Shown in pieces: positions 227 to 42,441 of a DNA stretch of 64,000 nucleotides. Origin of the DNA: Bugula neritina (Eukaryota; Animalia; Bryozoa); NCBI GenBank assembly GCA_964035545.1, contig OZ037771.1:5799190-5863189 (forward strand), written 5' to 3'. Every line of letters starts with the position of its first letter. Within the stretch, counting starts at the first letter, position 1. The position numbers were made by a program, and so were the translations under genes. The notes under the pieces were generated by a model, which worked only from the letters and a program-made list of their open reading frames with translations, was not told the DNA's origin and made no database searches.

Positions 227-430
227 ACCTTGCAGATTGGCATATCTGCTCTTGGGGCGGTTCTCTTTGGAGTCTACTTGGTGTTTGACACCCAACTGAT
301 GCTTGGAGGCAGACATAAGTATGCCATTTCTCCTGAGGAGTACATCTTTGCAGCTCTTAACCTATACCTTGACATCGTGAATCTGTTTCTCTACATTCTA
401 TCTATCCTCAACGAAGGCAGGAGGAATTAA
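227..430 (+). CDS. Protein lifeguard / TMBIM (Bax inhibitor-1 family), terminal coding exon; gene starts upstream of the window
   Basis: Acceptor ttgtag at 221-226, then TLQIGISALGAVLFGVYLVFDTQLMLGGRHKYAISPEEYIFAALNLYLDIVNLFLYIL...*. The DTQ...SPEEYIFAALNLYLDI motif is characteristic of Lifeguard (GRINA/FAIM2-type) proteins. AATAAA at about 485 and 992. Confidence 0.95.
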   Translation, partial: TLQIGISALGAVLFGVYLVFDTQLMLGGRHKYAISPEEYIFAALNLYLDIVNLFLYILSILNEGRRN

Positions 431-1521: not shown

Positions 1522-4500
1522 ATGTCTACGTTGGGGTTATGTTTGCTTTCGGTAAGTTGGGTTTGTGTAGTGGCAGAGTATGGACTTGGAGTGATTAACC
1601 GACGCTGTCAGTTAAATGACACATTCGACAATCATAGATGCCAGATAAACAGTGGTAACCTTCTCTGTAATGCTGTTAATTCACCTCAATTTTATCGCTG
1701 TCAAAAGTAAGATGTTGAAAAAATGTATTGTAATTTCAATTTTCAATGCACCTAGATTGCTTCTACAAGCGCACATTATTATGTGGGATTTGTTAATATT
1801 TGTCAGTTATAGTGTTGAAAACTGCTGTAAAATATACTGTTTTTCTCTACAGCTTTCTTGCAACGTTTGATAATTCTTTGTTATGTATAACTCTAAGTCT
1901 AACTCACAGCATCATATGCTACACTAATTTCTTTGTCTCAAAAGTTTGCTTGTCTCTCCAGAGAATCGATGAATGGTGAGACCACATTCAGCTTTCTCTG
2001 GAGTTTGAGTGGCTCCATCAGCTACAGAACTCCTCTATCACCCCTCGAGACACTTGGCAGCCAAGTATTCGTTAACTCAAATCCACCACCACCTTACAAT
2101 TCTGCCAACTCTACCCGGTAAATCTTTACTTGTTTGTAGAATATATGCAGGCATTGAGTTTATACTTTTCTTGCATATGAAAAAGGGATTAAATTAATTT
2201 TAGCATTGAGAGTAAATAGAAATTTTAAACCGAAATAGTTGTATATTATTTAATCCAAAGTTTATTTGCCTTCTAAAATATTAGAAAATAATGCACATTA
2301 ATGCTGTTCAATTTAGTTTAGGTGTATCTTGAAAAATACAAATGCAATTTTTAATCAGAACATGAATTTGCAGATGATATATTTAGTTAGCTTTGTTCTG
2401 AAGCATGTTTCATATAAAGATACAGTTTTCTGTGTAGCCTTTGGACTATATAACATTAGGGCCTGGCTACACACTCGTAAGAATCACACGAAATCGTCTA
2501 TTTTACATGAAAACACAAGACGTACGATCAAATTTGAGAATTTATACAAAATCGTGTTCGCTGGGTGCACCCACAGAAGTTGATGAACAAAAGAGTTATT
2601 AAGTACTACTTGATTGGCCAATAGAATTTAAGCAATAGTGACTATTTCAGTTCTACCACATTTCTGTGACTGGCCATCTTAATTCTGCTGTTTTTATCCT
2701 GTGCAAGACCCATTCACGGACTATTAATTATGTGTTTTGTCCAACGGATGTGTGGCTGGTCATAACGAGAGGATAACTCATGAAAATATTTACACGAATT
2801 TTGTGTGAGTTTCACAAGTGTGCGGCCAGGCCTTTAGTGTGGAATATCTGTTAGAAATTTATTTTGGGTAGTCATACATTCTATACAGTACAGTGGAATG
2901 TGTGAAAACAGAGCGTCAGGAGCAATGTAATAATGTCCCTTGTGACATTTGTAACGCTGGTAATATGTGTGGAATATGCTCATACCCGAGATGCTCAACT
3001 AGAAGCACTCACAGCTACTGTTCATCAGGTACTGCACTTGTTATCATTTTCTCACTTTGTGACTGATTCCTTTAATCTTTTACTATATTTTTGAGTACTG
3101 CCCGGTATTACTCAGTATCTTCAGCCTTTCACTGTGTTAGCCTAAGGCCACACTGCTCGTATTGTGGTGGCTCGTGGAGCTACCAGCAGCACAATACGCA
3201 AGGTCGCGTATTGACCCGGAACTATGTACTCAGCCAATTAGCTAAGTTGATATTGAGTAGCAGTAGTTAGCTTCGCGCTACTAGCCAGTTGAGGATAGTG
3301 CAGTAAATTAAATAGACGTGTGTATTGTTAACTGTTTTATATCAGATTTTATTATGTATTCTTGTACCCAAATACAACGATATCTACTCGACTTATCACG
3401 GTGAAGTTTCTCTAGCAGTAAATAGACTCTCTTGGTTACACATCGACCCTAATTCTGAAAAACATAACAGTATTTTCGCAAGCGAAAATCTAAACCACAA
3501 GTGGAAAAGGTGTCCACTGTATGTGTTAAGAAAATATTCACACTTGTCGCTCAGCATTCTAAACGCAAGTGCGAATCGTCTCTGTCGTCGTCACCTAATT
3601 GGCTGGTAGTTATTTAGTGAGCTCACTTTTCTTAATTTAGTGCTACATTCCAATAAGTTGGGTTTTATTAAAAGCGAGTAGAGTTAAAAATGAAAACTGT
3701 AGCGTCAGTGAAATCTAGCTGGGGGCAGCTAGATTTTGCTGACGCTACAGTGGACACCTTTTCTACTTGTGGTTTTAATTTTCGCCTGCGAAAATATGCA
3801 CAGTGTGGCTCTAGGCTAACTCTCTCTTTTTCTCGCTCTCTCTCTCTCACTGTATTACTGTATTACTCTCTCATTGTATTACTGAATAACTGTATTACTG
3901 AATAATGCATCTATTACCGTATCCATTTACCAAGTTTATTAACAACTCTATTTGGTTTTTTGTAGCATATGAAGGGGCGCCAGTTGAATGCCAGGACTAT
4001 GGGCTCTGCGATTTCTGTGCTATCAAGGCCTGCCCAGCTGATGGGTGTACAAGTAGCAGGTGTGTCAACTGCACCTGTGCTTCAACGTCTCAGATTAGTA
4101 GGTGTTTCTGTCTTTGAATTTTATTCTGTAAAATATTATTTTTCTGTCATTTGCATTTACAAAGTTCTGGTTCGCTTCAGCCATTTACTGTTGTGTAACA
4201 CCAAACTGCTTTTGGCTATATACAAGAATGCTTGCACTGAACAGTCTTAATTCCTTAATTACTTGTTTGTTCACAAAAAGAGATTTTTAAATATAAGTCA
4301 AGTCCGGTAGGTAAGTTGAAGTATATGCATAATTTTTTTAAAGATTAACATGATTGGTCGCTGTTATGTATAAGAAACAAAAATAATGATGCATCGAATT
4401 TCTCTAACTTCATTTAGATGGTCTATGACTCAGAAGCCAAGTCAAGCTAAATACCAGTTTTACAATTTATTTTAACATCAGTATGTTTGTATTTAACAGG

Positions 4501-7500
4501 CAGTGCTTGCACGGCGGAGCAGTGTAAAATCTGTAGTCAGCCTGGCTGTTATCTGTGTAATACTGGCAGATTCAACTGTTTGGCTCAAGCGGTTACAAGC
4601 TGTGATCATGATGAAGTATGCAAAGACCCGCCTACTGTACCCAAATACCGAGTATCTTATAATATAGTAATATCACATCTGCCGAACCTTAAGGTAACTA
4701 GCCCATGGTCTGCAGAACCCAGGCATGTTGGTCATACTTTATCAACTTTTTGAGCTATATAGACATTGTATTGGCTCTACCGTTTAGTTTTTATTCTGTC
4801 TGGTAACCATGCGATTCTGTTATGATAGGAAATTAAAAGTGGGATTTTCGACACAATGTCTCGATACTTAGAGAGCATTTCCATTAAACAAGTGCCTCAG
4901 CTGCAAAAAATAGATGCATTTAAGACTGGGTAAGTGCGGCCACCACATTTTTTTGGTCAGTTTGTATGGTTTATTTTAGCATTTCAGGAGCAGTAGTGGA
5001 GAAATTGAGGTAGCCTAAGCTCTTTTATTTTATTGTTAAATTTTGGTTTGAGGCGCGGGTTGAAATTCTTGCAAGAACATAACTTTTTATGCTACATTTC
5101 TAATCTAGAACACAAGCTTTTCTTAATTTCTTCATTACTGCACCTACCTCTAGAGCTCATCTACACAGAGTTGCATAATAATTAAATAGAATCTGAAAGT
5201 TTCTGCACTCTCCTAGAACTTGGAATTGATGTTTGTATGTTATAGGCAGAACTTTCCCGTTCTCCACTCTTTCACATTTGACATGAGCTCTCAGTGTTCG
5301 CTGCAGAACCTGGAATTTATCAACCAATTGGTGACAACATCTTCACATTTGGATCTTGTAATCATATGCAAACCTGAAAGAAATATTCTCAGCCTAACAG
5401 GTATTTTTGTAGCAGAAGTGTAAAATAATTTTGCCCCCACTGGGATTCGAACCCGAGACCTCTGACTTGCAAGCAAATGTGCTAACCATTACACACCAAA
5501 GACCACTGAGTAAACTCAACACTACAAGAAGTGTTATGTTTAAGCAAAACTCCTGACTTAATACATATGTGCATTTATAAGATTTACTGTTTTGAAATGT
5601 TTTTAATAGCTCTTCTTAATAAATACTTATTATTTTTGACAGAAAATAAATTCAAATACACCGTTTTTGCCTCATTGTCTCGCAGTATTATTAAATTGGC
5701 AATATTATGTGTAATACTAAGTGTAACTATGTGTAGTTTTTTCCTCTCTTCTACATATTGAAACACTGTTTTGGGAAAATAAGCCTAACAAAAACTACTA
5801 TACGTAAAATATTTTATTAATCGTGCTAATATTTACTATATGTCGTTACACTATGATTTGTTGGCAATATGTGCAAGTTAGTGATTGAATACAAATTGCT
5901 TGCGTTCAGATATACTGCGTTTGTGTTTTTGTATTTGAGTTTAATTTTGTGACGTGATTAGCATTTGAAACAAAAACATTACAGGTCAAATGAATACCTA
6001 GTTATAAATATATTGTTTGTCAAGCAAGTGGTAAATTATAAATATATTACAGGTATTAGAAAACACGGAAGTAGGTTGAGAAAACTGGTGCTGATTGGCG
6101 TAACTGATGCCTTTCAGCTAGACTTCTGCTTATTCCCAACATATTGGGTCAACAGCGTACCAGCTAAAAAGTTGCATATTGTTGCTCCTTCAGTGAGAAT
6201 AGAGTGCGGCTGTCTCACAGCTTTCTTTAGAAAGTTTGGTAACGTAAATAACTACAAATAAAGAATTTTCGGTGCAGCATCAGTTGTGAATTTGAATAAT
6301 ATATTGTGAATAAATTATTTCATTATATATTTTAACCTGAATTCAGTAGATTACCATTCAACAGCAGTAGTGGAGAAATTGAGATAGCCTAAGTTCTTTT
6401 ATTTTATTATTAAATTTTGGTTTGGGGCGAGAGTTGACATTCTTGTGAGAAGATAACTTCTTTTGCTACATTTGTAATCTAGAAAACAGGCTTTTCTCAA
6501 TTTTTCCACTACTGCACCTACTTTTAGATTACAGAGAGATAATAGAGCTAATGGTTCTATTATGAAAGACACCTGAGGCTCAGTAATTGTACTCAGATTA
6601 CCTGATCATCACTTCTGTGTAAATTTCACTTTAGACCTTTCAAAGACTTCCCTACACAACAAATCAATATATACATGGTTATTTTACCACGCTCCTTTAA
6701 TTTATAAAGAAATCGGTATCAACAAGAAAGCTGAAAGTTTGAGTGGATAGTAATTAGTAACAACCTAATTGCTCAGTGAATAAAAATGTGTTGTATTTCG
6801 TCTTGACCTTAGCTTTCAAAATCAAGAACGCCGAGTCATATGGCGGGGACAGATATATAGAGTTTGAAGGCAGTGATGCGCTCAAGTGTGGAGATGGTAG
6901 CTCTCTATTTCAGCATTCATATAGCTGTGACGCAGATAACTACACCCCACTGCATGGTGTAGACATCAATATCGATATTACACACAAATGCTCAGCCGCT
7001 GGTCGTAAGTAAATTTATTATTCAGGTATGAGCTGTGCCGGTCCTACAATATTTCTAGTTGTTGCTCCCAACTACATGTCTATTATTTGTAATTTTACTA
7101 CCAGGCTGTTCTAGAGAAGCCATGAATTATAAATCAATCCTCATAGATAGCTGTTGATTTGGAATAGTCCATGCACACTTTTTTAATATTACATCCAGCC
7201 TTTCTGATGGCGGATATTATAATATACAATATTACAAGTAAGATGCTAGTGGTGCTTGTTGCAGAGTTGTGTCTCCTTAACTGTGACTGTGAGGTTGACT
7301 ACTTGAGTTGTAGTAATGGGCCCACTGTACACTCTCACAATGCTCATGTTGATGTCATCATTCAAGGTAGGTAGTTATATACCTTGAATAGTTGATACAC
7401 ACACACACGCGCGCACACACACACACGTACGCACACACACTCGCACCTGCGCACACACGCGTACGTCTCGTACACTTAGTACCCAAAATATACTCCTCAT

Positions 7501-10500
7501 TTAATTGTCTGCGCAATTTTACTAAGAATTGTCTCCTCAAACTATTATCAGGAATATTATAAGAATAACTCAACGTCAAGTGTTCTTATATTACTATATC
7601 ACATTCTACTCTGGCTTAGCTGACAACTTATACACACTATTTCTAGTAGGCAAATCCGGTACTGCATTGACAGCATTTAAGATATTCAGGATTTTACTGC
7701 CACATGTTTTGCAGCAATTCAAACTTTTAGTCCTGCTAGAGCCCATACTAATACTTACAGGTAGTAAACAGTAGTTTAAATAAAACTAAATACCAGGCAA
7801 GCTGCGCTATTTGCCATGATGTTAATGTTTATTGCTATCTTCTGGTAGATAATTTATGGTAGCTTGAAAACTTCCCTATGCTGTAGTGTAAACGATGTGT
7901 CCAATGATTTAGGCACTGACTATGGACACATTGGAAGGTTGCAGTCCAACTGTTTAGCCAACCTAACCAAAGGCTCTAATGCTGACACCATCAGAAACAA
8001 ACAGATCAAGCTGCTTCTTATTGAACTTGTGAATCTCACTGTAAGTGCTAGCAAACTGTGTTTGCTTTTTGTCAGGTAGAATAAACTTGCCTTATACAAA
8101 TTCTATTAGTCTGGATGCAATCTTTAATATTTATAGGGTTAAGCCATCATTATCTAATAGTGATGTAAGTTGGAGCTAACCTAAGATATCAATTTGTGTC
8201 ATAGTTTGGCCCACTTAAGCATGCTGCGACATAAGTTGTCAGCTTATTACTCAGGCAGCTTCAACCTGTTTCATCATGCTGTTCAGTAAAATTGAGATGT
8301 CCAGCTGTACTATAACAAGGACTGTATCCAGTATTATGAACAGTCCTTAACTTTTAGACAGGCTGCTTATTGTTCAACCCTTGCGCGTGAAGCTTCCCTA
8401 AAAAAAATGCAATATCAGAAAAGTTTTAATATATAAAAATATATATCTTTACTTTGATTTTCAACTCATGTTTCATTTTCAAAATATCATTTGAACTATA
8501 TTATATGTCTTTCTCCACTCTTCTTTTATTGAGAATATATATCTTAAATGCAGACAATAGACGTAGCAGCTTTTGATAACCATGCTGAGACATTCTTCCA
8601 ACTACACCTGTACAACCTGACTAGCCTCGCTAACCTGCCCACTGGATTGCTTCAGGGGGTTGTTAGAGCAGAGCTCATTGAAATCACCTTCACTTCAATT
8701 TCAAACCTAAATGCTTTCCATGGTGCGTTCACCCTTACAGTTATGTTTCAATTTGTTTCTATACTTAGTCACATTTGTGCTAACCACTAGTGTACCCATC
8801 TATGTGTAGCAGTATAAAATGAGCAAGGTGTAGCTGATTCAAACATACATAAAAACTTCGTAGGCAACCAAATTTTATACCCAGGTAAATTTTATAGACA
8901 GCGATGTAGAAGTTTTAATAGTCGTATTAGTTTAATTTTGTAATCAACGTTGATTTGGGGCGCAGGTTGAAATTGCCATGATAGCATAACCTCTTTTGCT
9001 ACAGTTCTACTTTAAAACACATGCTTTTCTTAGTGTTTCCATTACTTCACCTGCTTCACTTTTAGCTGCAATAGCAGTTAATAAAATAATATAACATAGT
9101 TGTTGTTAATAATTGAGTTATGTAATATTCTGTCACATGCTGCCATAGTATATCATTGAGCAGCTGATATCTTCTCAAAGTAAGAGCTGAACCCAAGAAA
9201 TTGTTTATTGCAGGGTTGAAAAATCAGCTTTTGGGAAAACTGTGGCTGAATGACAATAAAATATCTTCCATCAGCAAAGAAGCGTTTGCCGGTTTACCCA
9301 GTCTCATACATCTCAGACTTCACAACAATGAGCTGACGTCTGTACGTAAGCTCACCTTGCCACGACCTTCATTCTACAAGTGTACTGCGTGACCCCGTGT
9401 CTATTGTATGACATGATATTAGTAACACTAAGTATTGGTAAATGAATTTCAGCTGCTTTAGTTTTCTCCCTCTATACATGTGATACAAGTATGGAGAGGG
9501 AACATGTGACAAATGAGTTCTTAGGACGTAGAGACCTAATCACAGTTCACCTTGTGGTGCAGTCAGGATTTCAAGGCTATGAAAGCATTTCCCTATTATT
9601 TCAGCTAATTTTTGGGGCTAATTATTTATGTGCATGGCCAGAGGTGTAACTTCGCTTTTCAAGCAAAAAATGTCACAATTTAGAATAATGATTACAATTG
9701 CTTCAGTATTCCAGTATTGTCAGGTACCAGAATCATCTCAAACAAAAATATCACATCCGATATGTTATAGTTTTTGTATAACTGTGGCATGAGTGTAACA
9801 CTTACAATATGTTTTTCAAAAATATTGTAGATTGATTTCTGCAATCTCAGCTCTTTCTTGTGGACAGCTTTAGAGCAGCCCATATTTATGGAAGATGTAG
9901 AAAGTCCACAGGCTATTCAGTTAGTAGATACTTCTTATACTTTGTATGTAGTTAAAAAGTAGTTCTGTGTTTGTAGCTATGTGTATGTATTCAGATGTAT
10001 GTGTGTATATAGCTGTGTGTATATAGCTATATGTGTGTATGTAGATATATGTATGTAACTGATGCGCGTGGTGTAATAGTGAACCATTCATCTGTTTGAT
10101 TCCCTTCAGACTAAAGACTATGACATTGAGTGGTAACAACTTAGAGTGTTCATGTAAAATGGCTTACTTTCGACGATTCACTTCTCAATCAAATGAGACA
10201 AACTCTTATCAAACATTTCGCATCATGTGGGAGGTAAGCTGACATGTTGTCATGCAGCTAGAATTACCTGTTGAAGATATATCTGGGCAGTAGAGTAGTC
10301 CAGTAAAAAAGGGCAAGTAAAAAATTCTTTCATATTGGAGTAAGTCCGAGTGTACTCACGTGCTTCAGCTAAAGATATTTTTTTATTTCATAGATCAAGG
10401 TCACTCAACTTGTATTATCTTCCCTTAGCAACTAGCCAAGACATCTGAACCGAAGTGCAACATCAATGGCCTGTCTTATAGTCTGTCAGAGTTTCCTTTC

Positions 10501-13500
10501 GACTCCAAAACTTGCATAAACCCTTTGAAGTTGGCCTGCAATTGTATGGTTCCAGGTGAGAAGACAATTTCTAGTTGTTTTAGTTACTCTGCCTTCTCTC
10601 CAGTAACTGGAACACTATAATTATAGTGAATAAAAACCCATGTCTAAATCATGTTTGAATTAAGGCATTTTTTTAGTAAAACTATTTAAAATAATTTAGG
10701 ATTCTTGCATTTTTTGGGTGGCAAATAGAAATGCATAAAAACAATTTGAAAGGTGCACCTTCTAGCATTCATGATATATGTGTTTCTGTTCTTAGAGACA
10801 GAAACAGCTTGTGGGTGTGGCTACTGCACTAACAACTCTACTTGTGATCTGGAGAATGGCGTCTGCAGATGTCTAGACAAGTATATAGGTCCTTCCTGTG
10901 AACACAGCAGAGAGGTGTTTCCTGTTTGTGGCTTCAATAACTCTCTCAGATGTTACTCCAGTGCCTCGTGTTAGTGTCTTCTTCTCAGTGTTTATTGCAG
11001 TCAGCCATAGTTTCAAGGGCTTGTTTTTAGACAAATAACATTTTATAATTTGGGAAGACAAGATGCTTAGATTTTGACTCTTGCAAATGGAGATTTTGAT
11101 ATTTTTCGCACATAGTTCAGTATATTATGCAGGATTTGTGTTTTCTATTACAGGCAGCTACTTACAGTGTAATTGTCTAGACGGGTGGACAGGTGCTCAG
11201 TGCGATTTTTCGGGCGTATGCCATCCCCACCCTTGCAAATCATGGCAGACGTGTAAAGGTGTTGGTTCTTACGTTAACTATGAAATTCTCACTACTGAGC
11301 TGAAGAATGTTGTGAAGACCGCCTACCACTGCTACGGTATGTTTATAGTTGACTAGTCAACATGTGCAGCTAATGCTCTAATTCTAGCGTCCTGTCCACA
11401 GCTTTTATTGTACGCTGTCAAAATTCAACAAAATTTGTAGTGATGCATAGATCGCTCAATGCAACACAAAGTTTGGGGTTGCCAAGTTCAGTGGTTTGGT
11501 GAAGTTTTGAGTTTGGGTTGGAAGTTTGGTCAATGATGTGTATACAAACATTGCACCCGTGACTCCAAACTTTGTGCTGCATCTAGCAATCTTCTGAATA
11601 CTACATCTTAGCATATATTCTAAATTGAGGAAATTCCATGGTCTTACTGGGACAACTTAATATTGCTAATCATCTATTAAGTATAGTTGGTTTAATAGTT
11701 GTGTTATTTGCTGACTGGAAAAAGTTAAATTAAAAGTTCTTTTTTGCAGAAATAGATAATAGTTTACTTTCTTATAATACATAGCCATATAATTGTTATG
11801 ATTATTATAGCATGCATATCAGGATATTTTCTGCTTTTTGGCCTCAGGCTTATAAATTGATGAAATCAGCAAGACGTATTATTATACTTTTTCAGATCAA
11901 GAACTTTCAGAGGAGCAGATATTTGGGACCACAAAGTTAGAATGTAATATAAAGAAAAAAGATAGCTGTTCCTTTGTTGAAGGCAGCAGTTGTATTTCCA
12001 AGGATGGGTCATACTGTGGCTGTCCAATTAATCGTACCCTTGATATGTCTACTTACTCTTGTGAAAGAGCCCCGGGTAATCCTTGCATGAATATATATTC
12101 TATAGAATATGTCTATATACTGATGTGATGCAATGATTGCAGTGTAATAATTATGTTTACATAATATGATAGTCTACAGTCTACATTGATGAAGATGGTG
12201 GAAGGCTTTTTATTAGAATGACTTTTATAATAAATGTAGTGGTGGCAGTGGTAAAGGTAGAGGTGGGGAGGTTAATAGCAACATGCAAGTAAGGCAAAAC
12301 ATTGGGGTTGAAAATAGATACTGGAGAAAGCATATACAAGAAAGTGCATGATATGATATGATATGAAAAGGTGATATGATATGATAAGGTGATATAATAT
12401 GATAAGGTGATCTGATAAGGTGATATGATATGATAAGGTGATATGATATGATAAGGTGATATGATATGATAAGGTGATATATGATAAGGTGATATGATAT
12501 GATAAGGTAATATAATAAGCATATGCTGCATGTGTTCATGTATTTGTAGTAAAGTGCTTAGAGAATGCAGACTGTCTGAGACTGGGTCTCCGGTACATAT
12601 GCACTCGCAGTGAAGCGTTGGACAGAGAGTATGGTGTGACAGGAGAATCTCCCAAATACTGTGTCTGCAGCAACCCAAACTTGGTATGACGTCACTGTCT
12701 AGATTCTAGAGTGACCAGTAATCTCAGGCTACATCGTTTATAGTACATTTTAAGTCAGGCATCAACTTACTTGATTGGTGTTCTCTTTCTTATAGATTCA
12801 ACTTTTAATTATTCGCACCCTGTAATTGTGTTTTCGGCTCTTGCATATAATATGCAGTTCTTATTTAGTTCATTGCCAATAAGTCGCCGCACATTTATAA
12901 AAGGAACTAAGCTTTAAATTTTTCTCTTTAATTCTCGTTATAACATATTATATGGTAAACATTATATAATAAATTTATTGCGTAGCGTAATTTATTTATA
13001 ATAGCATGCAAATGAATTAAGATATACACAACTATTTGAAATTTTTTCTAGTGATGATCATTTGTGTTTCTTGCTGTTGTAACAAGAATTTCTTCAATTT
13101 TTCAATGGCTTGTTAAGATTTATCAATAATTTTTCAAAATGTTTGAAGTTATTCATCCATGATTTTTGCTCTCTATTTAGGTTCTTTCTAATATCTTATT
13201 ATCACTGTCATTATGCTACATTATTTACTTCTAATCACACACACACAAACACACATCTTTTGATTGTTCTCTTATTGCAAGTCCTTGACATTCAAAATAT
13301 CTTTTACTGTTATAACTTATAATGTGAATTAATAGCTTTGTTCTGAGGGTGTGTTTGTTGATTATAGCGCAATTCACTAGACGGTTCGTGCACCACAGGT
13401 GAAGTAATACTCAGACCCCCAGCTACAAATGCCCCTTTTCAATGGAAGCCTCTGTATTCCTACTTTCTAATAGGAGCTGCTTCTCTCCTCTTTCTGGTGT

Positions 13501-15866: not shown

Positions 15867-16543
15867 TCATCATGGTATAGATGCTCTGAATCATTTAAAC
15901 TTCCTTCTTACTCCTCTATTTCTAAGCCTCTTCTCTTTTCACATTCCTTTGTATTTTATTCTTACTATATATTGTTCAAACATCAACATGGTCATCATGT
16001 GGTATTTTTTGTTTTGTTGTAAAATAAATCATTTCAGCTTCATAACTGTTAAGTAATATTTGGTCTAAAATGAAATAAATATTATTTCTTTATTTCTAGT
16101 AGTTGTATTATTTGTAGCAGCCTAAAATTATTTTCTTTTTCAATTAATTTGTGAAAAAATCAGAGGAGTGTTTGAAGCAAGCTTTACATGGATTAAGATA
16201 TGCTGATCAGCTCAACTTTGAAGTAAAAGTAAAATACTTACGTAACTTAATGTTAGAGATAATTAATTTTCTTTTAAACGAATTGATTGACTGCAAAAAT
16301 CTCTGTCAAATAATCCTGGTGTTTTTAAAAGTTTAGCCACCTATTGGCACTATAATACAAAGCAGTAAAGAAAATTTAGAAACAAGCTTTCTAGCACTTA
16401 GAATTTATTGCCAACAATATTCACATTGTGTGGTGAGCCAAGTTTATAAATGCTTATAATTGTTGCACGTAAATACTGCAGTTTAGTAATAAATTTGCAG
16501 TCTGGACAGAGAAGATTGTGCCCTTATAGCCGTATAAAACACA

Positions 16544-19500: not shown

Positions 19501-22500
19501 ATTGCTTATCTAATACCATTCTGCAACATGGCATGTTGGTTTTGATGATACATCAAGTTTTTCTTTTCAAGTCACTAGAAGCTGGACTGTTTGATGTCTT
19601 CGCTGAATATTTAGAGACTATCTATTTGGAGTTGCCCTCACTCACTAAGACATTGGCTCCCTTTGAAACAAGGTTTGATGTTAGTGAATTTTGTAAGCTT
19701 CTGTATCATAATCATACATATCTAGATTAAAGCCACACGAGATTGAACTTTACTGACTGATTCTTAAATTTCCATATTGAGTATTTAAGCAAAACTGAAA
19801 AGTGAATGTTTTTTAGCTGTAACTAAACAGTCACATTGATTTTGCTGCCATTTACAGGCCAGTGTATCATATGCTTTCCTCATTTACCCTCAACAACTCG
19901 TACGGCGGATGTTCACAGCTTGAAAGTTTTCAACTGTTTAGAAACATCAGGTTGACTTCCTCTTACATAGACATCTCAATACTCTGTTCACCAGACGAGG
20001 AACCATCATCTTTTCTGGCTGCATCATTGCTAGAAGGTAGGTATACATGTATTACAGAATAAATCTTCACTAGAAGTTAATTATTCTATGTCATAGCTCT
20101 CAACTAATGGTATTCATACCATAATAACTCATTACTAGAAGTTACTTATACTGCATACTAATAACTCTTTTCTGGAAGGTCATTGTATTATATAATAACT
20201 CTCAACTAATGGTAGTCATACATTAATAACTCATTACTAGAAAGTATTTATATTACAGAATAATTATCTATAATTAAAAGGCAGTTATACATTTATACTA
20301 TTGTAAAGCATTAAGTAAAAGTAAAGTCACATTTTATTTGAAATGATGATATTATGAAAAAATATTTAGATTAATATGATTAAATATTTTAAAATTTATT
20401 GTCGTTTCAAAGTTTTATGCCGTTCCATGACTATTTGTGTGTAAGGATAAAGAAATCTCAGTAGGCTAAATTCTGTACAATTGTTTTTATGAAGTTTAGT
20501 GGGAGGCGCAAACATACTTCCCTTTGTCAAAATTCTCATCAAAAACACAAACTGTTCTCAATCTTTTCATTACTGCATCTACTTCTCCTCAACTGCCATA
20601 GCTTATGTGCAAAGGTTTCCAACTGTCTATTTTAGATATAAATGTGTTGAAACAAACTAGACAGCTGAAATTTGTTGACGTATTTTCATTCTTTTCCTTG
20701 GATTTGTGTGCTATGCACAGTTTCTATTCTAATGGAATAGCTGGCCGTGAACTTTGGGTAAGCATTTAACAAGCCTACATTTTTCTGTTTTTAACCAGCA
20801 AGAGGTCAGTTACCAGAATATGACCTTGAACTATTGTGAGGTTCTCTCAACACTGATTCACAGCAATTATATAAGACAATTTTACAGCTATAACTTATAT
20901 TTCCCTACTGAACAGTAAAACAATTGCAAAATTATTAATATATAGATATGTCAAAGATAAATTTATATAAATTCACATCACACTTGAAATTTACTGAAAA
21001 ATTCGCCAGATTTTTCCATATAATATATGTACGTATGTATAGAGGTTGTACGCTACATGCTATATACTAAATGCTATATATGTCATATATGCTGAATGCT
21101 ATATATACATATATATGTTATATGTGATATATGCTAAATACTGTATTTATGCTATACATGTGGTATATATGCTATATAATATAATGATGCAGTGTTATAC
21201 TTTATATACAGTTAAGTTCCAGCACTCTAGTGAAATGTTTACCCTGTGACTCCACATATATCAAAATGTTCAGTAAGTTTTACAAATAACTCTAATAGTA
21301 TGCCTACATTAGGATGTTTCGGTGAAAAGCAAAGCTAATAAAACAAGTTATCACAAAATTAACCCCTTCAACTGGGACATTGAGAGTTTTTTCGCTAGCA
21401 AAATGTTTGTGTATTAAGAAAGAATCAAGTAACACTTCCCAAAACTTTTAATAAATTACATTTAAAACAGTGATATTTGCTTTTTTACCCACAAGTACAT
21501 TTTTTCTGAACTACTCAAGTAGTTTTTAAAAAGTTATGCTCATCTAAATTATTCTGACGGTGCTTAAAGTTGCTTTTTAAGAGCAGTTGCAACTAAAGCA
21601 GCTGTGTTTTACAGAACCACCCCAATGTAATGAGTAAAATTATGTATTACGTAAAAGTTAGCTAGAAGCTTGTTTGTAACATATTTTATGTTAAACTAAT
21701 AAAATCTACTAGAAATGATAATTACATAACTTTTATTTGTATTTGATCTAGCACTATCATGACTATCTTCTAGTTAAGTTGTAAGTGATAGCGGTTGATC
21801 TACAGTGACATGCTTTATCTCCCGTAGTATTGCCTGCGATCAGCAAAATATTTGGTTTGTATTACCATTTATGTTTTGATGAAGAGCGCTTATTTTAGTT
21901 AATATTTCTGACCTCAATGTTGCAATAAATATATTCAGTTGAAAATGATGGAGAAAGTAGCATCGGGTTCTATCAACACCCCTCTCGTAAAATTCTACAA
22001 TGTGACGATGGAACACAACTAACTAAGGTGAATCTGCCTTGTGAGTCTATGGCAGAGGTCACTGTAACATCATGGACAGACAGGTGCCTTGAGTCAGGTA
22101 TGCTCCATTATGTTATATACACCGTATACTCTATACATTATACAACTGTTTGTTCCTATTGCTTTAATGTATTCTTTTTGAAATTTAAAGCTTCCGCAAA
22201 ACTATCATTTTTGCAGTAATTAATTAGTTAAAATTTGTCTCTTTTGCTACTAAAGTGTACACTGTTGTTATAGAAAGGAGTTGCTTTGAGAAATGCAACT
22301 GCCACGTCCCTCACTTTGAATGTTCTTCTGGACCTCTGGTGACAGACAAGGACACTTTCTTCGCTGTAATAGTTGACAGTGAGTATAGCCAATAGCAGAC
22401 ACTTATGGGAAGAAATAGAAGAGATTATAGAATAAAGCAGACAAAAGGCTCAATAAGCTTATATTGTTTTAATTTAGTCTCATGGTAATAGCAAGACTAG

Positions 22501-25500
22501 AATAGCTACAAGATAGCAATGAATGAGATAAAGTAAGACCAATAAACAGTTTATTGAGATTTCGTTTTTTGTTGACTAATCCTCTGTAATAAATTGTATA
22601 GTAAATGTGCTACAGTTGAGTATGTACATGTGCTATGAGTAGATGTGTATGTATAGGATATACATTCACAGTACTATGTATGTGTATATTGTAGAGGATA
22701 TACATCCGCAGTACTATATGTATGTGTGTAGACTGTAGAGTCTACATTTATATACTTTACTTACATGTACATGTATATACTCTACACTGTAGAGTGTTAT
22801 GATATGTATTATTTTTATTGTTTGTAGATGAAAACTTCTGGCATTTGGAGACGCTACAGAAAGGCTACCTGCGTAATCTTACTACCAACAAACATTACGC
22901 ACTGTTTGGTAGAAAACTGTTGAATATAGTCATCACTTCTTTAGAATCTCTAAAGGTATTGAAACAAGTTTGCTGTCTCTATCTTTTCAGAAGAGAATAT
23001 TTTAATAATGTTGCCAGGGTATAATAGTGAGAGCGTATATAATAGTGAGAGAGTATAATAGTTAGAGAGTATATAATAGTGAAAGAGTATAAAGGTATTA
23101 ACTTTGCGGTCTTTCCTCGAATTTGCCTTAATTTTGTGTTTGCAGCTTGCTCTCTGGCCTCATTGAAAATCTTTAACAATGTACTGTTTTTAAGAGTATA
23201 GAGAAAGATGCATTCAAGGGTTATGAAGCTATAAGTCAGGAGATGAAGATATACAATAATATTCACCTCAAAACACTCCCTCCATCTCTGCTCAAAGACT
23301 TTTACAAGGCCATCAAGATTGACATCACATTTAATGGGATTGAAGACATGACATTCTTGCAAGGTGAGAATGCAGTCAAACCTCCAGGTTACAGCTGCTT
23401 AGTTAGCCAAAATAACATTAAGTTTCTAAAATACTATTATATTTACTAATAGTTAGATTGGGAATCCCTTAGGGAGACTCATTTACCTATTATTAGTTAT
23501 TTCAGGTTCGATAAATCATGAAGCATATTAATTTTTAAAAAGCATCAGTTTTTATATAAATTAATTTCCACAACACTTCTCAACATTTTTCAAAAGTTGG
23601 CTTTTTATTGCTTGCGAAAGTTGGCAAATTTTTATTCTACAATTGACTTTTAACTTTTTCCTCATGACTGTTCAGTCCTTTTGTTGGATGCTTTTGGTAG
23701 TAAAGTGTTATAGATGCTGTAATGGCTAAACACCCACTGATGGTATGTCATGTTATTTGTAATAGCAGAAGTCTTAAGTTTGTCTACAGGATATTAGCAT
23801 AATGTCAACTATTGTTTCTTAAGGTTATTCAATATATTACACATTCTAAAATATACTATATTGCAATTTGTACATCATATTTTGTTGTAGTAATATACTG
23901 TAGTATAACTACATAATGCAAATTTTTCTGTAGGACTGAGGAGTAGTGTTTTATCATTTCTCTATTTGAATGACAACCAGATAACTTCTGTAGACAGGCT
24001 GGCTCTGATTGGTCTCTTTAACTTAGAGGTGCTGAGGCTACACAATAATAAAATATTTAATGTAAGTATTTCAGCTGACAAGTGCCTGGTGTAGCTACTC
24101 AGTGTTCCAGTGGCTATTATAGCGGCAATGCATCGCACACATGCTATAGTTTATTATCATGTTTATTAATATGAAAACTGCAAACATGTTGCAATCTTAA
24201 AATAAAATGCTGAAACAATAGAGAGTAGAACATCAAAAAATAAATACCCATTGTTTTACGATGGCTCCTTATAATAATTGTTGTATTCTCAACTACCTAA
24301 TGTTCCCATTTTTAAATAAGAACAGCAATAATTTATAGTAATTTGTAATAAATAGCGATTATTTGCTATGCATTTCTATGCAATGGGGTTGTGAATTGGG
24401 AATACATAGTTGTCAGATCTTGTGGAATGCTTTAGATTGACTTTTGTGAACTTAACACGTTTCTATGGACACCAGTTGAGCAAAACCTGTTTGCAGATAG
24501 CCAAGGTCAATCAAGGACATTTCAGTGAGTAGGTTACTTCCACAATATTATTATACTGTTTGTTAGACTCTTTGTATACCACCTTGTCATTCCAATTTCT
24601 TTAGAGGTTGTGGTTGAGTCAGTGAAATGAATGGTTAGTTTAAAATTGCTTAAATTTTATGTTTTTATGCAAAGTAGTAGATTTTATTGCCATTATTACT
24701 GTTTCAAGTTTTCAGATTGAAGTATTCTTCAAAACACAACTCAAATTTTTATCTAACAAATTAGGAAACCACTTGCTGATGATTTTTAGTTAACATTTAT
24801 TTATTCCTGATTACCTATCAGCTTAATTTTGGCCTGTGTTCTTAAGGCACTGATAACTGGAAAGGGTTGCAGATTAACATGTTGATATTTTGTCTGGAGT
24901 TGTCTTCTCAAAACAGTGGTAATATACCAACCCCTTCTAAGTATAAAATATGTTATAACTTTAGTACTGGTAACTACCATTAAAGATGCTAGCAGTCTAA
25001 CCCCCTAGACACACTTTGCCGTACCGTAGGCTGTAACGTAAAATGTCAGCCATTTTAATGTGTTCATGCTGAAGTTCCCAAAGTGCGCTATTGTGTATGA
25101 TTCATGACACCTCATTGGACATCTATATTCAATGAATTCACGTGGACGTCTTCTTGTCCAATAGGAACCCGCCGCAACATTTTTCAATCAAGCAGTGCTT
25201 GATCCTAACGTACAGCATCACCGTATAGGAAGCTAGGACATTTGTAAAAATGGCTGACATTTTACGTTACGCCCTAGGGTGTGGCAAAGTGTGTCTAGAG
25301 GGGCACAACAGTCAATTGCATAAACTAGCATACTATCATAGAGCAAATGTTGTGTAATGACTAAATTTGATACCTCATGTTAATTTAGTGAAAAAATGAT
25401 GACGTTGAGTGGAAACCCGCTCAGCTGTGGCTGTAGTATGGCATTCTTTAGGAGGTTTACTGATCCTTTGCCAGAAGACTACTTGAATGAGCCACCATTA

Positions 25501-28500
25501 GTACTTACTTGGGAGGTAGTTACTTTACCTATTTGTGTAGTCGTTAGTATTCTGTATACAGTAGAGCTTGCACTCTTATGGTTACCTACCCGTGTAGAGT
25601 TGACACATGACATGTGGTCAGATCAGCGTATTTCCTTTAGAATTTCTTGGAAAGCAATTTATACAGTGCATATAGTGTCGGTGCCAAAAGGGTTTGCACT
25701 CTTTTGTAGTTGAAACAATTATTTTTCAACATAATATCATATCTAAGTCATTTTATTTATTTATATATTAATTACTTCTTAAAAAAGCTGTTTTTTGGAA
25801 ATACATAATAGTTCAGGTTTTCAAAGCCTATGTTACAGCCTCTGCTTTATACAGTCTTTCTTTTTATCTATACTATTCGGCAAAAAATTTGCAGTCATAT
25901 TTTATTTTTTTGTCCATTTTCAACAGTAAATAATGTGCAGTATACTCTCTACTTAATCATTTCAATCTAATTTCTGGTTACATTGTATTTCTTACAAGTA
26001 ATTGATCTATATAAGACTTTCATACAATCTATTATTTATCACTATTACAGAACCAAAAACAAATACTTTTGCATGTTTCAATACTAATAAGTTTGTTATT
26101 CTTTTTATTTATTAGCAACTTTCTGGTACGAAAGTCCCCACTTGCTCATTTGGGGGGACAAATTTAGTTCATCAGATTCGCTTGACTGACTTCACCATAA
26201 AAACATCATCATGTGTGAATCCTAGAAGACTGAGCTGTGGTTGTCAAGTTCCAGGTGCTGCCTGCTGTCATACTACCTGTACCTGTTTAGTATATTTAAG
26301 TTTCTATGTATTGCATAACGCTTATCTATCTGAGTATATTATAATATAGTACAATAACATGCATGTCTATGTATAATATAATGTATTATATGATCATCTG
26401 AAAACTTAAATATTGCATAATGTAATATATATCATCTAACTATATCTTGATATTGTCTAATATAATGCATTATACATGTTTCTACAGGGTGTGTACTAAT
26501 ATAATGTAATACTATCTAAATATCATTATATTGTATAATACACTATAATGTATTATACACATTTAATAGCTGTATTCGTATTACTGTTTGTATTCTTATC
26601 TATATACACTATTATGTATTTATTTTACAGATTGTAGAATAATTGAAGTTATTTTTGAGGTAATCTGTAACTTGCTTGTTTTGCAGAGACTGAAATAGCC
26701 TGTGGATGCAGTTATTGTGCTAATGGTGGGACATGCAACCGGCTCACCCACTCTTGTGATTGTCCTAGTGGCTATACTGGGGCATCATGTTCCATCTCTG
26801 AAGAGTCTCTACCCAAGTGTGGAGTAGCCGATACACTCATCTGTAGAAATGGAGCTAAATGTGAGAATTTAAAGCTTTGTTTACTAAAAAAACTAATTTT
26901 AAATTGTAATTATAGCAGCACTCGATCGCTGTATAACAAGCTGGTCTATTAACCCACAGAAATTATTAAAGTCAGCAAACTACTAACATTACGTTTCTGA
27001 GTTTTGCATTTTGCAAATGGATTTTTTATTTGATGTTTGGAAACAGTGACATCGAATGAAACCCCAACCGTAAATTCGTGCAAACCGCAAACAGAAAATC
27101 ATCCGTAGGAGCATTATATATTCGCATTATATAAAACGCAATATGTAACAGAATTAGGTAACAGGTTTGCAGTCAATAGACCTTTTTCAGAGGTCTCCGA
27201 TATCCAATTTACAATTAAGAGTTGTGTTCTCCCAAAGTGAATAGGTTAAACCTTTGTATAAAGAGCAAACTCGTTAAAACTTTAAATTTTGGCTGCTACT
27301 TAAAATTTTAATTATGCAATAGAATTGTTCTTTTAGGAGATAGATATTTTGATATAAGCACAATTATTGGCAGTTCAAAAAAAGTTTTATAGATATTTCT
27401 TCATGAAAAATTTTGAAGAAAATAAACTTGAAAGCATTTTTGTGGTTTTTGTTACTGGCAATGCTGAAGAAGCACTTCAGCATTGCTCAGTAACCAAAAC
27501 CACAAAAATACGTTTAGGTTTATTTTGTTCAACCATTTTCATTTTAAGAGAACACAACTCTTAATTGTAAGGGGGGCTATTGGGAACCTCTGAAAAAGGT
27601 CTATTGACTGCAAACCTGCTTCCTAATTCTGTTACATATTGCGTTTTCATAGCTCTGAAAAGGGTTTATTCAATTCAATTAAATTATATTATAAATACAA
27701 GCATGTAATGAAATATGTAGTTCATTAGCAAAACTAGAAGAAAGATCTGCTTTCTCAAGAAATTGTTTGAGCATATAATACATTTCAGGCAAATGCCATT
27801 TTTTCAACAAAAGTTTAAAAATTATGTTCTAGTACTCAAATAAAATTGTTTCTGGAATTTTCCAAGCTAATGTTTTTATAATGATAGCCCACTAAAAGTT
27901 AAATTCACAGCCTAACTTAGCTTAAAATACTCTAACTAATACACACATGACACTTTCAGGCGTAGACAACATGTGTGACTGTCTAACTGGTTGGGTAGGA
28001 GTGGAGTGTGACCTTAGCGTGACCTGTACTGTGCCGTTTCCATGCAAGCCGTGGCAGCAATGTGCCTCTCTGCTGTCACTAGTTGAGGCAGATAAACTCT
28101 CGTCTAAGATGCATGAGTTTCTCCATACAAAGCTCCAGTGTCTAGGTAATGGTTATTGTTGCTACATAGTATATATTTTGAGAGTTGTCTACACCATCTG
28201 GGTATGTATTTTGTGTGAGTTGTCTACACTATGTGGGTATATATTTGGTGTGATTTGTTCACACCATGTGGGTATGTTTACAGTATATGAATATATTATA
28301 TTATTACAATATTTTGCTTTAGTTCATTATATTTTATCCTATTGTATTGTATTGTAATTCATTTTAATTATGATATTGCATTATACTTTATTATACAATA
28401 ATATACTATAATACATTATATTATTTTATATTGTGTCATATCATATCATGCCTATATCATATTATGTATTATACTATATTAAGTATTAGATTCTATTATA

Positions 28501-29037
28501 CTATAATTATTATATTTTTTATTTTGTGGTTTATTTTACTTTATTATATTCTAGTTAAATTTTGGTAAACATAGATATCATAAAATTACAAGCTGGATAC
28601 TTTATTCATATATCATCTGTTCTATAAAAAGTTATTTATTCTGAACACAGACCCTGTGAACTATCCATGTCCATTATTTAATAATGCAAAATTATAACAT
28701 TATAATAATGCATATTCACCTACATAATATAAGATTGAAATTGCTTCTGTAGACATCTCTCTACTGATGACTCAAACTTTTCCTTCCACTTCTTTGTATT
28801 GCTCAAAAGAAGACAATTCTGATTGTGAAAAAGTTGAAAACTCTATCTGCACGCAATTTGAAGATTACCATCTGTGTAGATGCCCTCTATATATACCTTA
28901 CAGCCAATCTCATACAAAGTGTTCCAGTAAACTACCTTGTAAGTAGAGGTGTATATGTTGGTTAAATACAGTGTAAATATGTGTGTGGGTGCATGCATGT
29001 GTGTGTATGTGATGACTTATTACTGCATTTCAATAGG

Positions 29038-29129
<92 letters not shown>

Positions 29130-31231
29130 GTGAAATGTGAGAGAGCTAGAGATTGCTATGCCCTGAGTGGACCACACACCTGTGCCTCTCCCCATCAGTT
29201 TGAACACCCGGAACAGGCAGCTGAGGAGGATCAGGAAAAAGAAGAGGATCATGAACATGAAGAGTTCACAGAACATCTCGTTAAATACTGTCACTGTATA
29301 AATGAGCAAAAGGTAAGAATTAGTGCTTCACTCTTCTCAGACTTTTCTAACTTATTTCAAACAGTAGTACTCGCTAGTTAGCTTGTAAATGTGTGTTCTA
29401 AAAGTAGAAGCAATGAATTTTTCTGTTTTCTTTTTCATTCCAATGTTGCAAAATCATATTAGCTCTTGGCCTTCATACAAATGTTTGAACAACAGTTTAT
29501 ACACATTTCTTTACACAATCATGCAACACCGTTCTGCACATATGCTATTACCCTTTTAGAGAGACTTGTTTTCCTTACAATGCAATAGAGATGATGAAGA
29601 TCTAGACGCGATAAGTGTAGCAGCCCTTGATTGGAAACTCTGGCATGTGTTACTCATCATTGGCTCTGTGACTGTGACGTTTATATTAGTGGGCATCACT
29701 GCAGCGTCATATGGTCGTATTGGCAATGGGTAAGAAATTGTCTACACAATTACATAACTGTTACCTTCTCTGTAGACTAACATCATGTGTTGTGATTCAT
29801 TCTTTTGGCTTTTTCATTATTCACATTTTTTTCACTCTCCATTTTATCGAGGTTGGTGCAGTATTAGCGAAATTGAGAAAAGCCCGTACTCTAGATGTGA
29901 GAAGTAGCAAGATTGAAGCTATGTTCTCACTTAAGAGTTTCAATCAGCGCACCCAGCGCACCAACTCAGACTTTATTAAGAGATTTAAATAACTTTAGCT
30001 AACAAAATTTTTTTCCGCTGCTCTTAAATTATTTTATTATTAGTAGTTTTCTACTCTTTTTGCTTTGTATCCTAAAACATTCTTAGATTGAGGCTTGACA
30101 TATTGGATGAAAAGTTACAGAAACGCTTTGGAATAAATGCCTTGTCGCACCTGCTAGGTAAACGTCGCTCATCTGAAAACCCACGAGCTAAAGCGTCTCA
30201 AGGTGAGCTATCTAAGCCGGCTGCTAGAGATTCATGCAGCAGCCATATTGTACTACATGAGGCAATTAACGAGAAAAATTAATTCAGTTTGCTAAATTAA
30301 AAACATGAATTGAAACTCAGAAAGCGTGCTCACTATAAATGGTAACCATCAAATTCAAGCAAATTCACACTCACTGTTCAGCATGTTATTCGCATGAAAT
30401 CTGCACTCAACAGCTCATTTTTGGGTAAGCCAAGTTTTCTGCACCCAGTCTGTGCTGGAAATCTGTGTGGTGTAGCCCTATGCTTTGCGTGCCAGTTTGC
30501 AAGCTGGAGGTCTCGGGTTCAAATCCCAGTGGGGGCAATGAGTTTATATAGTGTTCTACGGTTGCTTGACGTGTATTGATAAAGTTGTTATTGTGAACTA
30601 TTAACAAATTTCATGATATGATTCACGGCCTTCTTGTATTGTACATCACGTGACATCTTTTATGTATGTTCAGTCCGCAGTAGCAGAAGTTCAGTGAGGA
30701 AACACAGCTCGAGACTAAGGAATGACAACCACTACTATAAGAAGTCAGATACTCAGCATAGCCCGAGTGAGCCTTTCCCAGCCCAGTCTGACCTTCAACC
30801 TTCCAGACTCCCGTCTACTATAGAAAATTCCAGTCGAGTTACTCAAGCTAGCAATCATCGGCACAGCAAAAAGAAGGTAACATATTGTACTTTTATTACA
30901 GGCATATATTATATTATCTCCCATCTTTACAAAATAACCCAAAAATATGCTATGAGATTTTTTACACTTATCTTGGATTTTTAATTCATATTTATTGTAA
31001 CAGTCTTGCTACCCCATCGCATATATACATATTTGTGATAATGTTTTCTTAACAGTTAATAGAATAAACAATTGAGTATATAATAATGTGTCTACACCAT
31101 GATGTGGGAAGGGGGGTTTAGCCACAAGCTCGTGTGTCGACTAATTTCAAGTTCTGGTCATAATATTTGTACAGGCTAAGAAGAAGCGGCATAGCCCTAG
31201 AATGTCAAATTCAACCACTAGCTACGTTTAG
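16544..31231 (+). CDS. Orphan type-I membrane receptor, paralogue 2: same architecture, tail ends ...STTSYV (about 1330 aa, 23 exons)
   Basis: Exons: 16544-16752, 17619-17771, 18083-18929, 19572-19672, 19858-20036, 20636-20757, 21212-21272, 21939-22097, 22274-22378, 22828-22955, 23195-23363, 23934-24061, 24436-24524, 25389-25515, 26116-26254, 26687-26860, 27960-28145, 28753-28938, 29131-29312, 29560-29729, 30087-30202, 30674-30876, 31175-31231. Exon-by-exon homology to paralogue 1, e.g. IDFCELNTFLWT vs IDFCNLSSFLWT, MTLSGNPLSCGCSMAFFRRFT vs MTLSGNNLECSCKMAYFRRFT, ETEIACGCSYC vs ETETACGCGYC. TM: VLLIIGSVTVTFILVGITAA. Confidence 0.85.
17758..17862. repeat. 28-bp tandem repeat duplicating an exon end and its donor
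   Basis: TCATATGGTACTGAGTAAGTATAACATA x3 plus a degenerate fourth copy. Confidence 0.9.
24998..25305. mobile_element. Non-autonomous TIR element, possibly hAT
   Basis: TIRs of about 55 bp (CCCCTAGACACACTTTGCC…TAACGTAAAATGTCAGCCATTTT and its inverse); imperfect 8-bp flanks TAGCAGTC / CAACAGTC. Confidence 0.75.
27133..27670. mobile_element. Foldback/composite TIR element with about 100-bp inverted arms and an internal hairpin
   Basis: 27133-27232 is the inverse of about 27547-27647 and includes AATAGACCTTTTTCAGAGG; second hairpin at about 27435-27512. Confidence 0.75.
29039..29125. repeat. (TA)n microsatellite
   Basis: About 85 bp of pure TA repeat. Confidence 0.98.
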
Positions 31232-36600: not shown

Positions 36601-36665
36601 CTCAGTCTACAACCTCAGCTCCCTGGTCTAAAGCAATGCTACGAACAACTGGCAGCTGGAAGTAA
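33664..36665 (+). CDS. Espin/forked-like PxWK-repeat protein A (putative actin-binding)
   Basis: Exons 33664-34174, 35142-35227, 35610-35727, 36373-36665, phases consistent. Motifs TPSWKVPILQRR, IPPWKQELLIRRK and LPAWQRELILKK resemble the espin/forked actin-bundling module peptides (IPEWKRQ, MPAWRRDLL, LAPWQRQVILKK). AATAAA immediately after the stop. The start codon is uncertain. Confidence 0.65.
36155..36364. repeat. Perfect 103-bp tandem duplication
   Basis: ATAAAATGTAAATTTG…CCAGGGAAAAG present twice with period 103. Confidence 0.9.
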
Positions 36666-42240: not shown

Positions 42241-42441
42241 TTAAACAAATTACAGATTGTTTTTCAGTCTTATAGTTAGTGACATGTTCTAAGAAATACG
42301 AGAATCAACCACTCAGCAAGTAGAGAACTTAATAGAAATTTTATTTTATAAACTGCAGAAATATTTTGTTATAAAATTTAAAAGAGGGCAATATGTACAG
42401 AAAAAATATACACAAGTTATGCTACACTAAGACCAGCTCTC

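Follow-up and report, generated by a model that had tools for sequence, protein, structure and literature searches.

The window analyzed here, a stretch of 64,000 nucleotides from the genome of the bryozoan Bugula neritina (contig OZ037771.1, positions 5,799,190 to 5,863,189 of the forward strand), carries two head-to-tail genes, referred to below as A and B, which appear to be ancient tandem paralogs, old and slowly evolving. Both are predicted to encode type I membrane proteins in which the modules are arranged in the following order: a signal peptide, a four-cysteine module, a Cys-rich region with CxxC motifs, a degenerate block of leucine-rich repeats (LRRs) with its cap, an LRRNT, a second LRR block, an LRRCT, EGF-like modules, EB-like modules, a transmembrane (TM) helix and a tail. 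The function that we favor, at roughly even chances, is that of constitutive cell-surface adhesion or ligand-binding receptors.

Gene Models and Shared Introns

The models of the two genes were built from splice sites and reading frames, and the junctions between exons 1 and 2, which have phase-2 acceptors, were set using homologs found at two other loci (L038 and L039, described below). All 46 introns of the two models have GT-AG borders, no internal stop codons occur, and 677 bp separate the stop codon of gene A from the ATG of gene B. The pair of genes about 680 bp apart described in a first-pass annotation of this DNA is therefore a real one. The searches of libraries, databases, and structures reported below were run exon by exon, while the joined A and B proteins were compared with each other and with genomic DNA. 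In a blastp comparison, the two proteins were found to be 29.8% identical over 978 amino acids (aa), with an E value of 9e-125 and 404 bits, as compared to 22.7 bits for the best of 20 shuffles. The sharing of almost every intron position and phase by two strongly divergent genes, which had also been pointed out, was borne out at this level of about 30% identity: 20 of the 21 introns of B have a same-phase intron of A within six alignment columns, and 14 lie in the identical column. The introns that are not shared are located in the Cys region, the first LRR block and the tail. From the first LRR block to the TM helix, 46 of the 49 cysteines present in A are kept in B. The open frames, the shared introns and a ratio of nonsynonymous to synonymous substitution rates (dN/dS) below 1 argue for the coding status of both genes, and the exon junctions given here are those predicted from the DNA.

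The Cys-Rich N-Terminal Region and Its Homologs

The relatives of B exon 3 number three among 1.84 billion proteins, and a profile search added none. The closest (P0001, at locus L037 on a JGI contig) is 86% identical to B exon 3, and L037 most likely belongs to a cryptic sister lineage of B. neritina. The other two, P0002 (L038) from an ENA marine metagenome and P0003 (L039) from a Logan run, show that homologs exist in at least two further animals, which we infer to be bryozoans. Exon 2 is likewise present at both loci, and its intron phases are those of B. In addition, the ENA biosample of L038 yielded a homologous fragment of the LRRCT exon (P0005), showing 56% identity. No locus was obtained in two JGI pattern scans, and the search for homologs of the EGF exon gave no match. 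The presence of the same exon frame in the sister lineage and in more distant animals upholds the old, lineage-restricted origin proposed previously.

In B and its homologs, exon 3 starts with a first Cys module and closes with a second one that leads into the initial strand of LRR block 1; 13 cysteines of module 2 are invariant in the alignment. The spacer between these modules measures about 30 aa in L039 and consists of two extra CxxC repeats in B; in L038, it comprises at least 477 Cys-free residues, 40% of which are Ser or Thr (mucin-like), with an assembly gap inside and an open frame on both sides. Gene A has a shorter version of the Cys region, split over three exons, and its exon 5 matches the profile of Cys module 2 of the homologs weakly (E 3e-4). 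What was initially taken to be a CxxC repeat array is therefore not uniform, but is composed of two conserved Cys modules around a variable spacer. Exons 1-3 gave no match in Pfam, PDB, or the ESM Atlas. The two Cys modules are thus unnamed by any of the libraries used and constitute the novel element of the pair, which agrees with the earlier statement that such an N-terminal CxxC array is not known in multiple-cysteine-cluster Tolls, Slit, HyLRR, or vasorin. The N-terminal hydrophobic stretch of both proteins is likely to be a signal peptide, based on inspection of the sequence. Exon 2 was also considered as the first LRR turn, in which case the Cys region would be an island in the solenoid, and this was not supported (HHalign E 0.15-0.5).

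LRR Blocks, EGF-Like and EB-Like Modules, and Tails

The first LRR block and its cap align with the second block and its cap over 163 columns (HHalign probability 83%, E 9e-6), and a phase-0 intron occurs at the equivalent place of both blocks (introns 5 and 11 of A). The ectodomain therefore originated from a cap-LRR-cap unit that was duplicated internally. At the level of single exons, the comparison of the two blocks reached no significance, the sequences being too short. The distinction previously made between degenerate and canonical LRR blocks stands in part: block 1 is identified as LRR by its alignment with block 2, but strict LxxLxLxxN repeats number only two per protein. The repeat profile peaks at LRR-like spacing across block 2. 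The first LRRCT-like cap is clear in A, and its first CxC is degenerate in B, as judged from the HHalign alignment with the second LRRCT; the cap between the LRR blocks has the pattern CxxxCxC, and the LRR-NT pattern used was a shortened, cysteine-only form after Dolan et al. (2007; PMC2235866). Among solved structures, the LRR and cap sequences most similar to those of the pair belong to extracellular LRR proteins of a generic kind, namely LGR4/5, LRIG1, Nogo receptor, LRFN, and GPIb-alpha, and the profile of the LRRCT exon of A matches the LRFN and GPIb-alpha caps in PDB (E 1e-4 to 1e-3).

Two of the three EGF-like modules originally proposed are complete; the third has only four cysteines, plus an insert of about 25 aa. 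Elsewhere in the assembly, an uninterrupted frame of 2190 codons consisting of tandem EGF-like repeats (L016, contig C3, 3969055-3972156) was observed, which is unusual in an intron-rich genome. The exons located between the EGF-like modules and the TM helix encode six-Cys modules, with no FN3 or Ig domains detected in Pfam and exon scans, and the scanned exons of A and B gave no Pfam match with LamG or a C-terminal cystine knot. The identification of the two six-Cys modules with EB (PF01683) is a lead: their Cys spacing fits, and the top ESM Atlas match of the B exon carries EB with a score of 0.88, which is under the level of 0.9, while no Pfam match was obtained. In the second EB-like module of B, some 16 additional residues form an acidic, His-rich insert (29210-29275, forward strand), which is absent in A.

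Each protein has a single TM helix. The tails, which are 90-140 aa long and low in complexity, contain no Pfam domain, including TIR or kinase, in the exons of at least 20 aa, and the window was absent among the matches listed in the TIR and TIR_2 searches of the genome; the description of A and B as single-pass receptors devoid of TIR and kinase thus holds. We infer that the YSPL and YGNV motifs of the A tail and the S-Y-V end of the B tail would be functional.

Copy Number, Selection, and Variation

Ten queries with exons distributed between exon 1 and the EB-like exon detected no copies other than A, B, and generic EGF matches, the counts obtained with exon queries being lower bounds, and no further copy occurs in the 100 kb flanking each side. 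The cluster or expanded recognition family suggested by the first-pass annotation is therefore reduced to a pair. Exons 2-6 of B were compared with L037, giving dN/dS values of 0.25, 0.41, 0.07, 0.17, and 0.37, respectively, with dS ranging from 0.14 to 0.27 (Nei-Gojobori method, a single pair of sequences, small counts). The Cys exon, with a dN/dS in the 0.3-0.5 range, is less constrained than LRR exons 4-5 (0.07-0.17), without any net positive selection. In run X1, a DNA run that covers the locus and contains no splice joints, one contig contains the whole of B exon 3 and no differences are listed within the exon, whereas the 3' introns of gene A are heterozygous, and seven of the nine listed coding differences are silent; this run represents one individual, possibly the sequenced one, and its contigs drop variants.

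Table 1. Predicted exons of genes A and B and the modules assigned to them (positions in the window).
Feature	Position	Strand	Assignment	Basis
Gene A	1522..15866	+	26 coding exons; predicted 1187-aa type I membrane protein	Open spliced model; exon-intron pattern common to gene B
A exon 1	1522..1706	+	4-Cys module Cx10Cx8Cx10C, preceded by a likely signal peptide	Alignment with B exon 1, in which the four Cys are conserved
A exon 2	1962..2117	+	Conserved module of ~50 aa, possibly one degenerate LRR turn	Homologs in B, L038, and L039; phase-2 ends
A exons 3-5	2889-3028, 3966-4097, 4500-4693	+	Cys-rich region (24 Cys, 6 CxxC) that runs into the opening strand of LRR block 1	
A exons 6-9	4829-4929, 5246-5400, 6053-6238, 6813-7004	+	LRR block 1 (degenerate) with its LRRCT-like cap	LRR-CT1 pattern, aa 406-455; HHalign to block 2
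A exon 10	7265..7366	+	LRRNT-like cap	Shortened cysteine-only LRR-NT pattern, aa 483-496
A exons 11-16	7913-8040, 8554-8722, 9214-9341, 9831-9919, 10110-10233, 10429-10555	+	LRR block 2 (~7 repeats) and LRRCT	Pfam LRR_8, E 1e-8 (exon 13)
A exons 17-18	10796-10969, 11154-11336	+	EGF-like modules: two with six Cys, and a partial one with four	Pfam EGF_laminin E 1e-3, EGF_2 E 0.01, both below cut-off (exon 17)
A exons 19-20	11896-12075, 12550-12683	+	Two six-Cys EB-like modules	Cys spacing common to B
A exon 21	13368..13537	+	Predicted TM helix, ~aa 1026-1044	Highest Kyte-Doolittle window, 2.63
A exons 22-26	14061-14134, 14745-14911, 15256-15326, 15578-15664, 15851-15866	+	Tail of ~140 aa, basic cluster, Tyr motifs YSPL and YGNV	Last exons least certain
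Gene B	16544..31231	+	22 coding exons; predicted 1288-aa type I membrane protein	Open spliced model; exons 2-6 conserved in L037, dN/dS <1
B exon 1	16544..16752	+	4-Cys module Cx13Cx8Cx10C, preceded by a likely signal peptide	
B exon 2	17619..17771	+	Conserved module of ~50 aa	dN/dS 0.25
B exon 3	18083..18929	+	Cys modules 1 and 2 with two extra CxxC repeats between them, then the strand that opens LRR block 1; 15 CxxC	
B exons 4-8	19572-19672, 19858-20036, 20636-20757, 21212-21272, 21939-22097	+	LRR block 1 (degenerate) with its cap	
B exon 9	22274..22378	+	LRRNT-like cap	Shortened cysteine-only LRR-NT pattern, aa 614-627
B exons 10-15	22828-22955, 23195-23363, 23934-24061, 24436-24524, 25389-25515, 26116-26254	+	LRR block 2 and LRRCT	Pfam LRR_4, E 5e-6 (exon 12); PDB extracellular LRR matches
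B exons 16-17	26687-26860, 27960-28145	+	One partial and two complete EGF-like modules	Pfam EGF_2 E 1e-4, above cut-off (exon 16)
B exons 18-19	28753-28938, 29131-29312	+	EB-like modules (two), with an acidic/His insert in the second	Cys spacing; ESM Atlas lead
B exon 20	29560..29729	+	Predicted TM helix, ~aa 1178-1196	Kyte-Doolittle 2.48
B exons 21-22	30681-30876, 31175-31231	+	Tail of ~90 aa, basic cluster, ending in S-Y-V (class I PDZ-type motif)	

Comparison with Known LRR Proteins

Slit proteins are secreted and consist of four LRR domains followed by EGF modules, LamG and a C-terminal cystine knot. A and B resemble them in that tandem LRRNT-LRR-LRRCT units directly precede the EGF modules, but they have two units instead of four, two to three EGFs, no LamG or cystine knot, and a TM helix. 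With vasorin, they have in common the LRR, EGF, and TM parts and the short non-catalytic tail, and they differ from it by the lack of any detected FN3, the presence of two LRR blocks and several EGF-like and EB-like modules, and the N-terminal Cys region. HyLRR-1 of Hydra has EGF modules and a TM helix. The likeness between A/B and HyLRR-1/2, which are LRR proteins without TIR (PMC6043800), is one of architecture only, and the two animals differ in that Hydra is devoid of canonical Toll-like receptors (TLRs) (PMC1896004), whereas the B. neritina genome carries them. The multiple-cysteine-cluster Tolls, as defined in PMC8609888, are likewise type I membrane proteins, with two or more LRRCTs as well as an LRRNT located internally. 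Both A and B have two LRRCTs (the second identified from the PDB profile and the first cap by HHalign) and the LRR-NT pattern between them, but neither has a TIR in the same chain, and they also differ from these Tolls by their EGF and EB-like stalk, Cys-rich N-terminus and intron-rich genes. The earlier conclusion that the pair is not Toll, Slit, or vasorin is thus consistent with the domains defining each of these families (TIR; LamG and cystine knot; FN3), none of which was detected.

The two proteins fall in the broad class of extracellular LRR proteins with other domains, designated LRR_Other by Dolan et al. (2007), which is an arbitrary grouping and not a family (PMC2235866). Like the members of this class, they have a signal peptide (by inspection), LRRs capped by LRR-NT and LRR-CT, EGF-type domains and a single TM helix, without TIR, Ig, or FN3; LRR_8 and LRR_4 were at or above the Pfam cut-off, and EGF_2 was above it in B. 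They differ from the class by the two duplicated cap-LRR-cap units, the mostly degenerate repeats, the EB-like modules, and the unnamed Cys modules with their variable spacer. No description of this architecture was found in searches of the paper library.

TLRs in the B. neritina Assembly

In at least six loci of the assembly, a TM helix and a TIR sequence split by an intron accompany a long LRR frame (L044, L045, L046, and L048 on contig C3; L049, L050, and L051 on contig C2), and Pfam confirmed the assignment to TLR in the case of L045 and L046. These canonical TLRs contradict two published surveys in which TLR was reported to be absent in B. neritina (PMC8609888, PMC10279657). Since such loci exist, the A/B pair is not a substitute for missing TLRs. 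TIR_2 matches were also observed in long uninterrupted frames of 497 and 1550 aa on contig C17 (2951-3241 and 9640-9933) and of 192 and 226 aa on contig C1 (3015943-3016248 and 3055097-3055399); these do not look TLR-like and could be NLR-like, transferred, or contaminant genes.

Possible Functions of the Two Proteins

Low-copy, conserved, TIR-less LRR membrane proteins, such as Tartan/Capricious, FLRT, LRRTM, and the nematode LET-4/EGG-6, act in adhesion and matrix organization. The two old copies, the fixed Cys skeleton, the purifying selection and the tails containing motifs only suggest a similar role for A and B as adhesion or ligand-binding receptors, and the neighbors identified around the pair, which are housekeeping genes, also count in favor of this role. 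The proteins may act at cell-cell contacts or organize the epithelial or cuticle surface. The LRR faces would bind a protein or glycan partner and the EGF and EB-like modules would form a stalk, while the spacer of species-specific length (short, with extra Cys repeats, or mucin-like) would hold out Cys module 1 as a distal binding or spacing element. The output might be provided by short linear motifs, namely the C-terminal PDZ-type motif in B and the tyrosine motifs in A.

Several points weigh against the adhesion or ligand-binding role. The tail motifs, which are short and not the same in the two proteins, may have arisen by chance. The AlphaFold models of the Cys region have pLDDT values of only 35.9 and 33.5. 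No RNA run containing the locus was found in the read-index search, although this evidence is weak because the index requires near-identical words and the introns of the sister lineage diverge by 10-18%. Lastly, conserved low-copy LRR proteins can sense microbes, as in the case of Hydra HyLRR-2 (PMC6043800). Among the roles listed in the first-pass annotation (pattern recognition, allorecognition, or adhesion), adhesion or ligand binding nevertheless fits best; pattern recognition is no more than conceivable, and allorecognition is not supported.

In one of the two main rival readings, which is unlikely, A and B would be TIR-less pattern-recognition receptors or co-receptors like Hydra HyLRR, with LRR blocks that bind microbial products and signaling via a separate TIR-bearing membrane protein. 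Their LRR-cap-cap-LRR-cap layout resembles that of multiple-cysteine-cluster Toll ectodomains (PMC8609888), HyLRR-2 senses flagellin in a chimera (PMC6043800), and TIR domains are present in the B. neritina genome. However, the canonical LRR-TM-TIR genes make a split receptor unneeded, and no membrane partner carrying only TIR was found among nine TIR loci, most of which are full TLRs (short loci, incomplete search). The pair shows neither expansion nor any sign of diversifying selection, and its 21-25 introns per gene, as compared to the single open frames of 370-460 aa encoding the TLR ectodomains, argue against descent from those TLRs.

Vasorin and LRIG bind ligands or receptors and modulate signaling, with no signaling domain of their own. 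The other main rival, somewhat less likely still, is that A and B act in the manner of vasorin, LRIG, and Windpipe on a growth factor or morphogen of the host, which they would trap or for which they would serve as co-receptors, possibly with a shed ectodomain. The combination of LRR, EGF, and TM parts with no catalytic tail, in conserved low-copy genes, would suit it, but no FN3 or Ig was detected, and the tails keep a basic cluster and Tyr or PDZ-type motifs, suggesting intracellular partners.

A bolder proposal, which we consider improbable, is that the pair represents a bryozoan receptor class defined by a new Cys-rich domain pair, disulfide- or metal-stabilized, before or near the start of the LRR solenoid. 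The spacer, ranging from about 30 to more than 477 residues, would set the reach of the distal module, and the receptors would recognize settlement cues, symbionts, or neighboring colonies and signal via tyrosine or PDZ motifs, not TIR. Bryozoan surface receptors are almost unstudied, and A and B provide a defined, conserved, low-copy candidate; the structures of the two unnamed extracellular Cys modules could be new, and the spacer lengths form a natural series across species. By itself the pair opens no long-standing question, since nothing links it to immunity or colony fusion.

In a colonial animal, the Cys region, in which rearrangement among paralogs and species is strongest and dN/dS is highest, might be the variable specificity element of an allorecognition determinant or receptor of colony fusion. 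This role is very improbable, given that dN/dS is below 1 in every segment compared and that the CxxC exon shows no variation in one individual; the extreme polymorphism and diversifying selection by which Alr and fuhc/fester-type systems are recognized were not observed in B exons 2-6 and the one individual examined. It is more improbable still that the two models combine exons taken from three or more transcripts, as the missing RNA match might suggest, or that A and B are unrecognized orthologs of Slit or another known family, since the phases are compatible at all 46 introns, intron positions are shared from exon 1 to the TM exon, exons 2-3 occur in the same order in three other genomes, and a TM helix is present, with no LamG, cystine knot, FN3, or TIR detected in the scanned exons.

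Neighboring Genes and Repeated Elements

The last exon of a Bax1-I (TMBIM/lifeguard-type) gene (227-430, forward strand) lies about 1.1 kb upstream of gene A. Downstream of the pair, exons of an RRM gene resembling nuclear cap-binding protein CBP20 (42420-44270, reverse strand) were identified, as well as those of a probable NT5DC-type 5'-nucleotidase gene (50300-56400, reverse strand), recognized by translated motifs. Two low-complexity frames on the forward strand (33664-34230 and 36339-36665), the second of which has repeated PxWxxELL motifs and a weak Phostensin_N match (E 0.005), are possibly exons of a phostensin/taperin-like gene.

By eye, two inverted copies of a tRNA-like element were observed in introns of A (5435-5507, reverse strand) and B (30465-30537, forward strand), which are probably a tRNA-derived short interspersed nuclear element or a miniature inverted-repeat transposable element (MITE). 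Related inverted-repeat MITE-like elements, likewise recognized by eye, are located in intron 3 of gene A (3440-3820) and in the nucleotidase gene (54030-54370).

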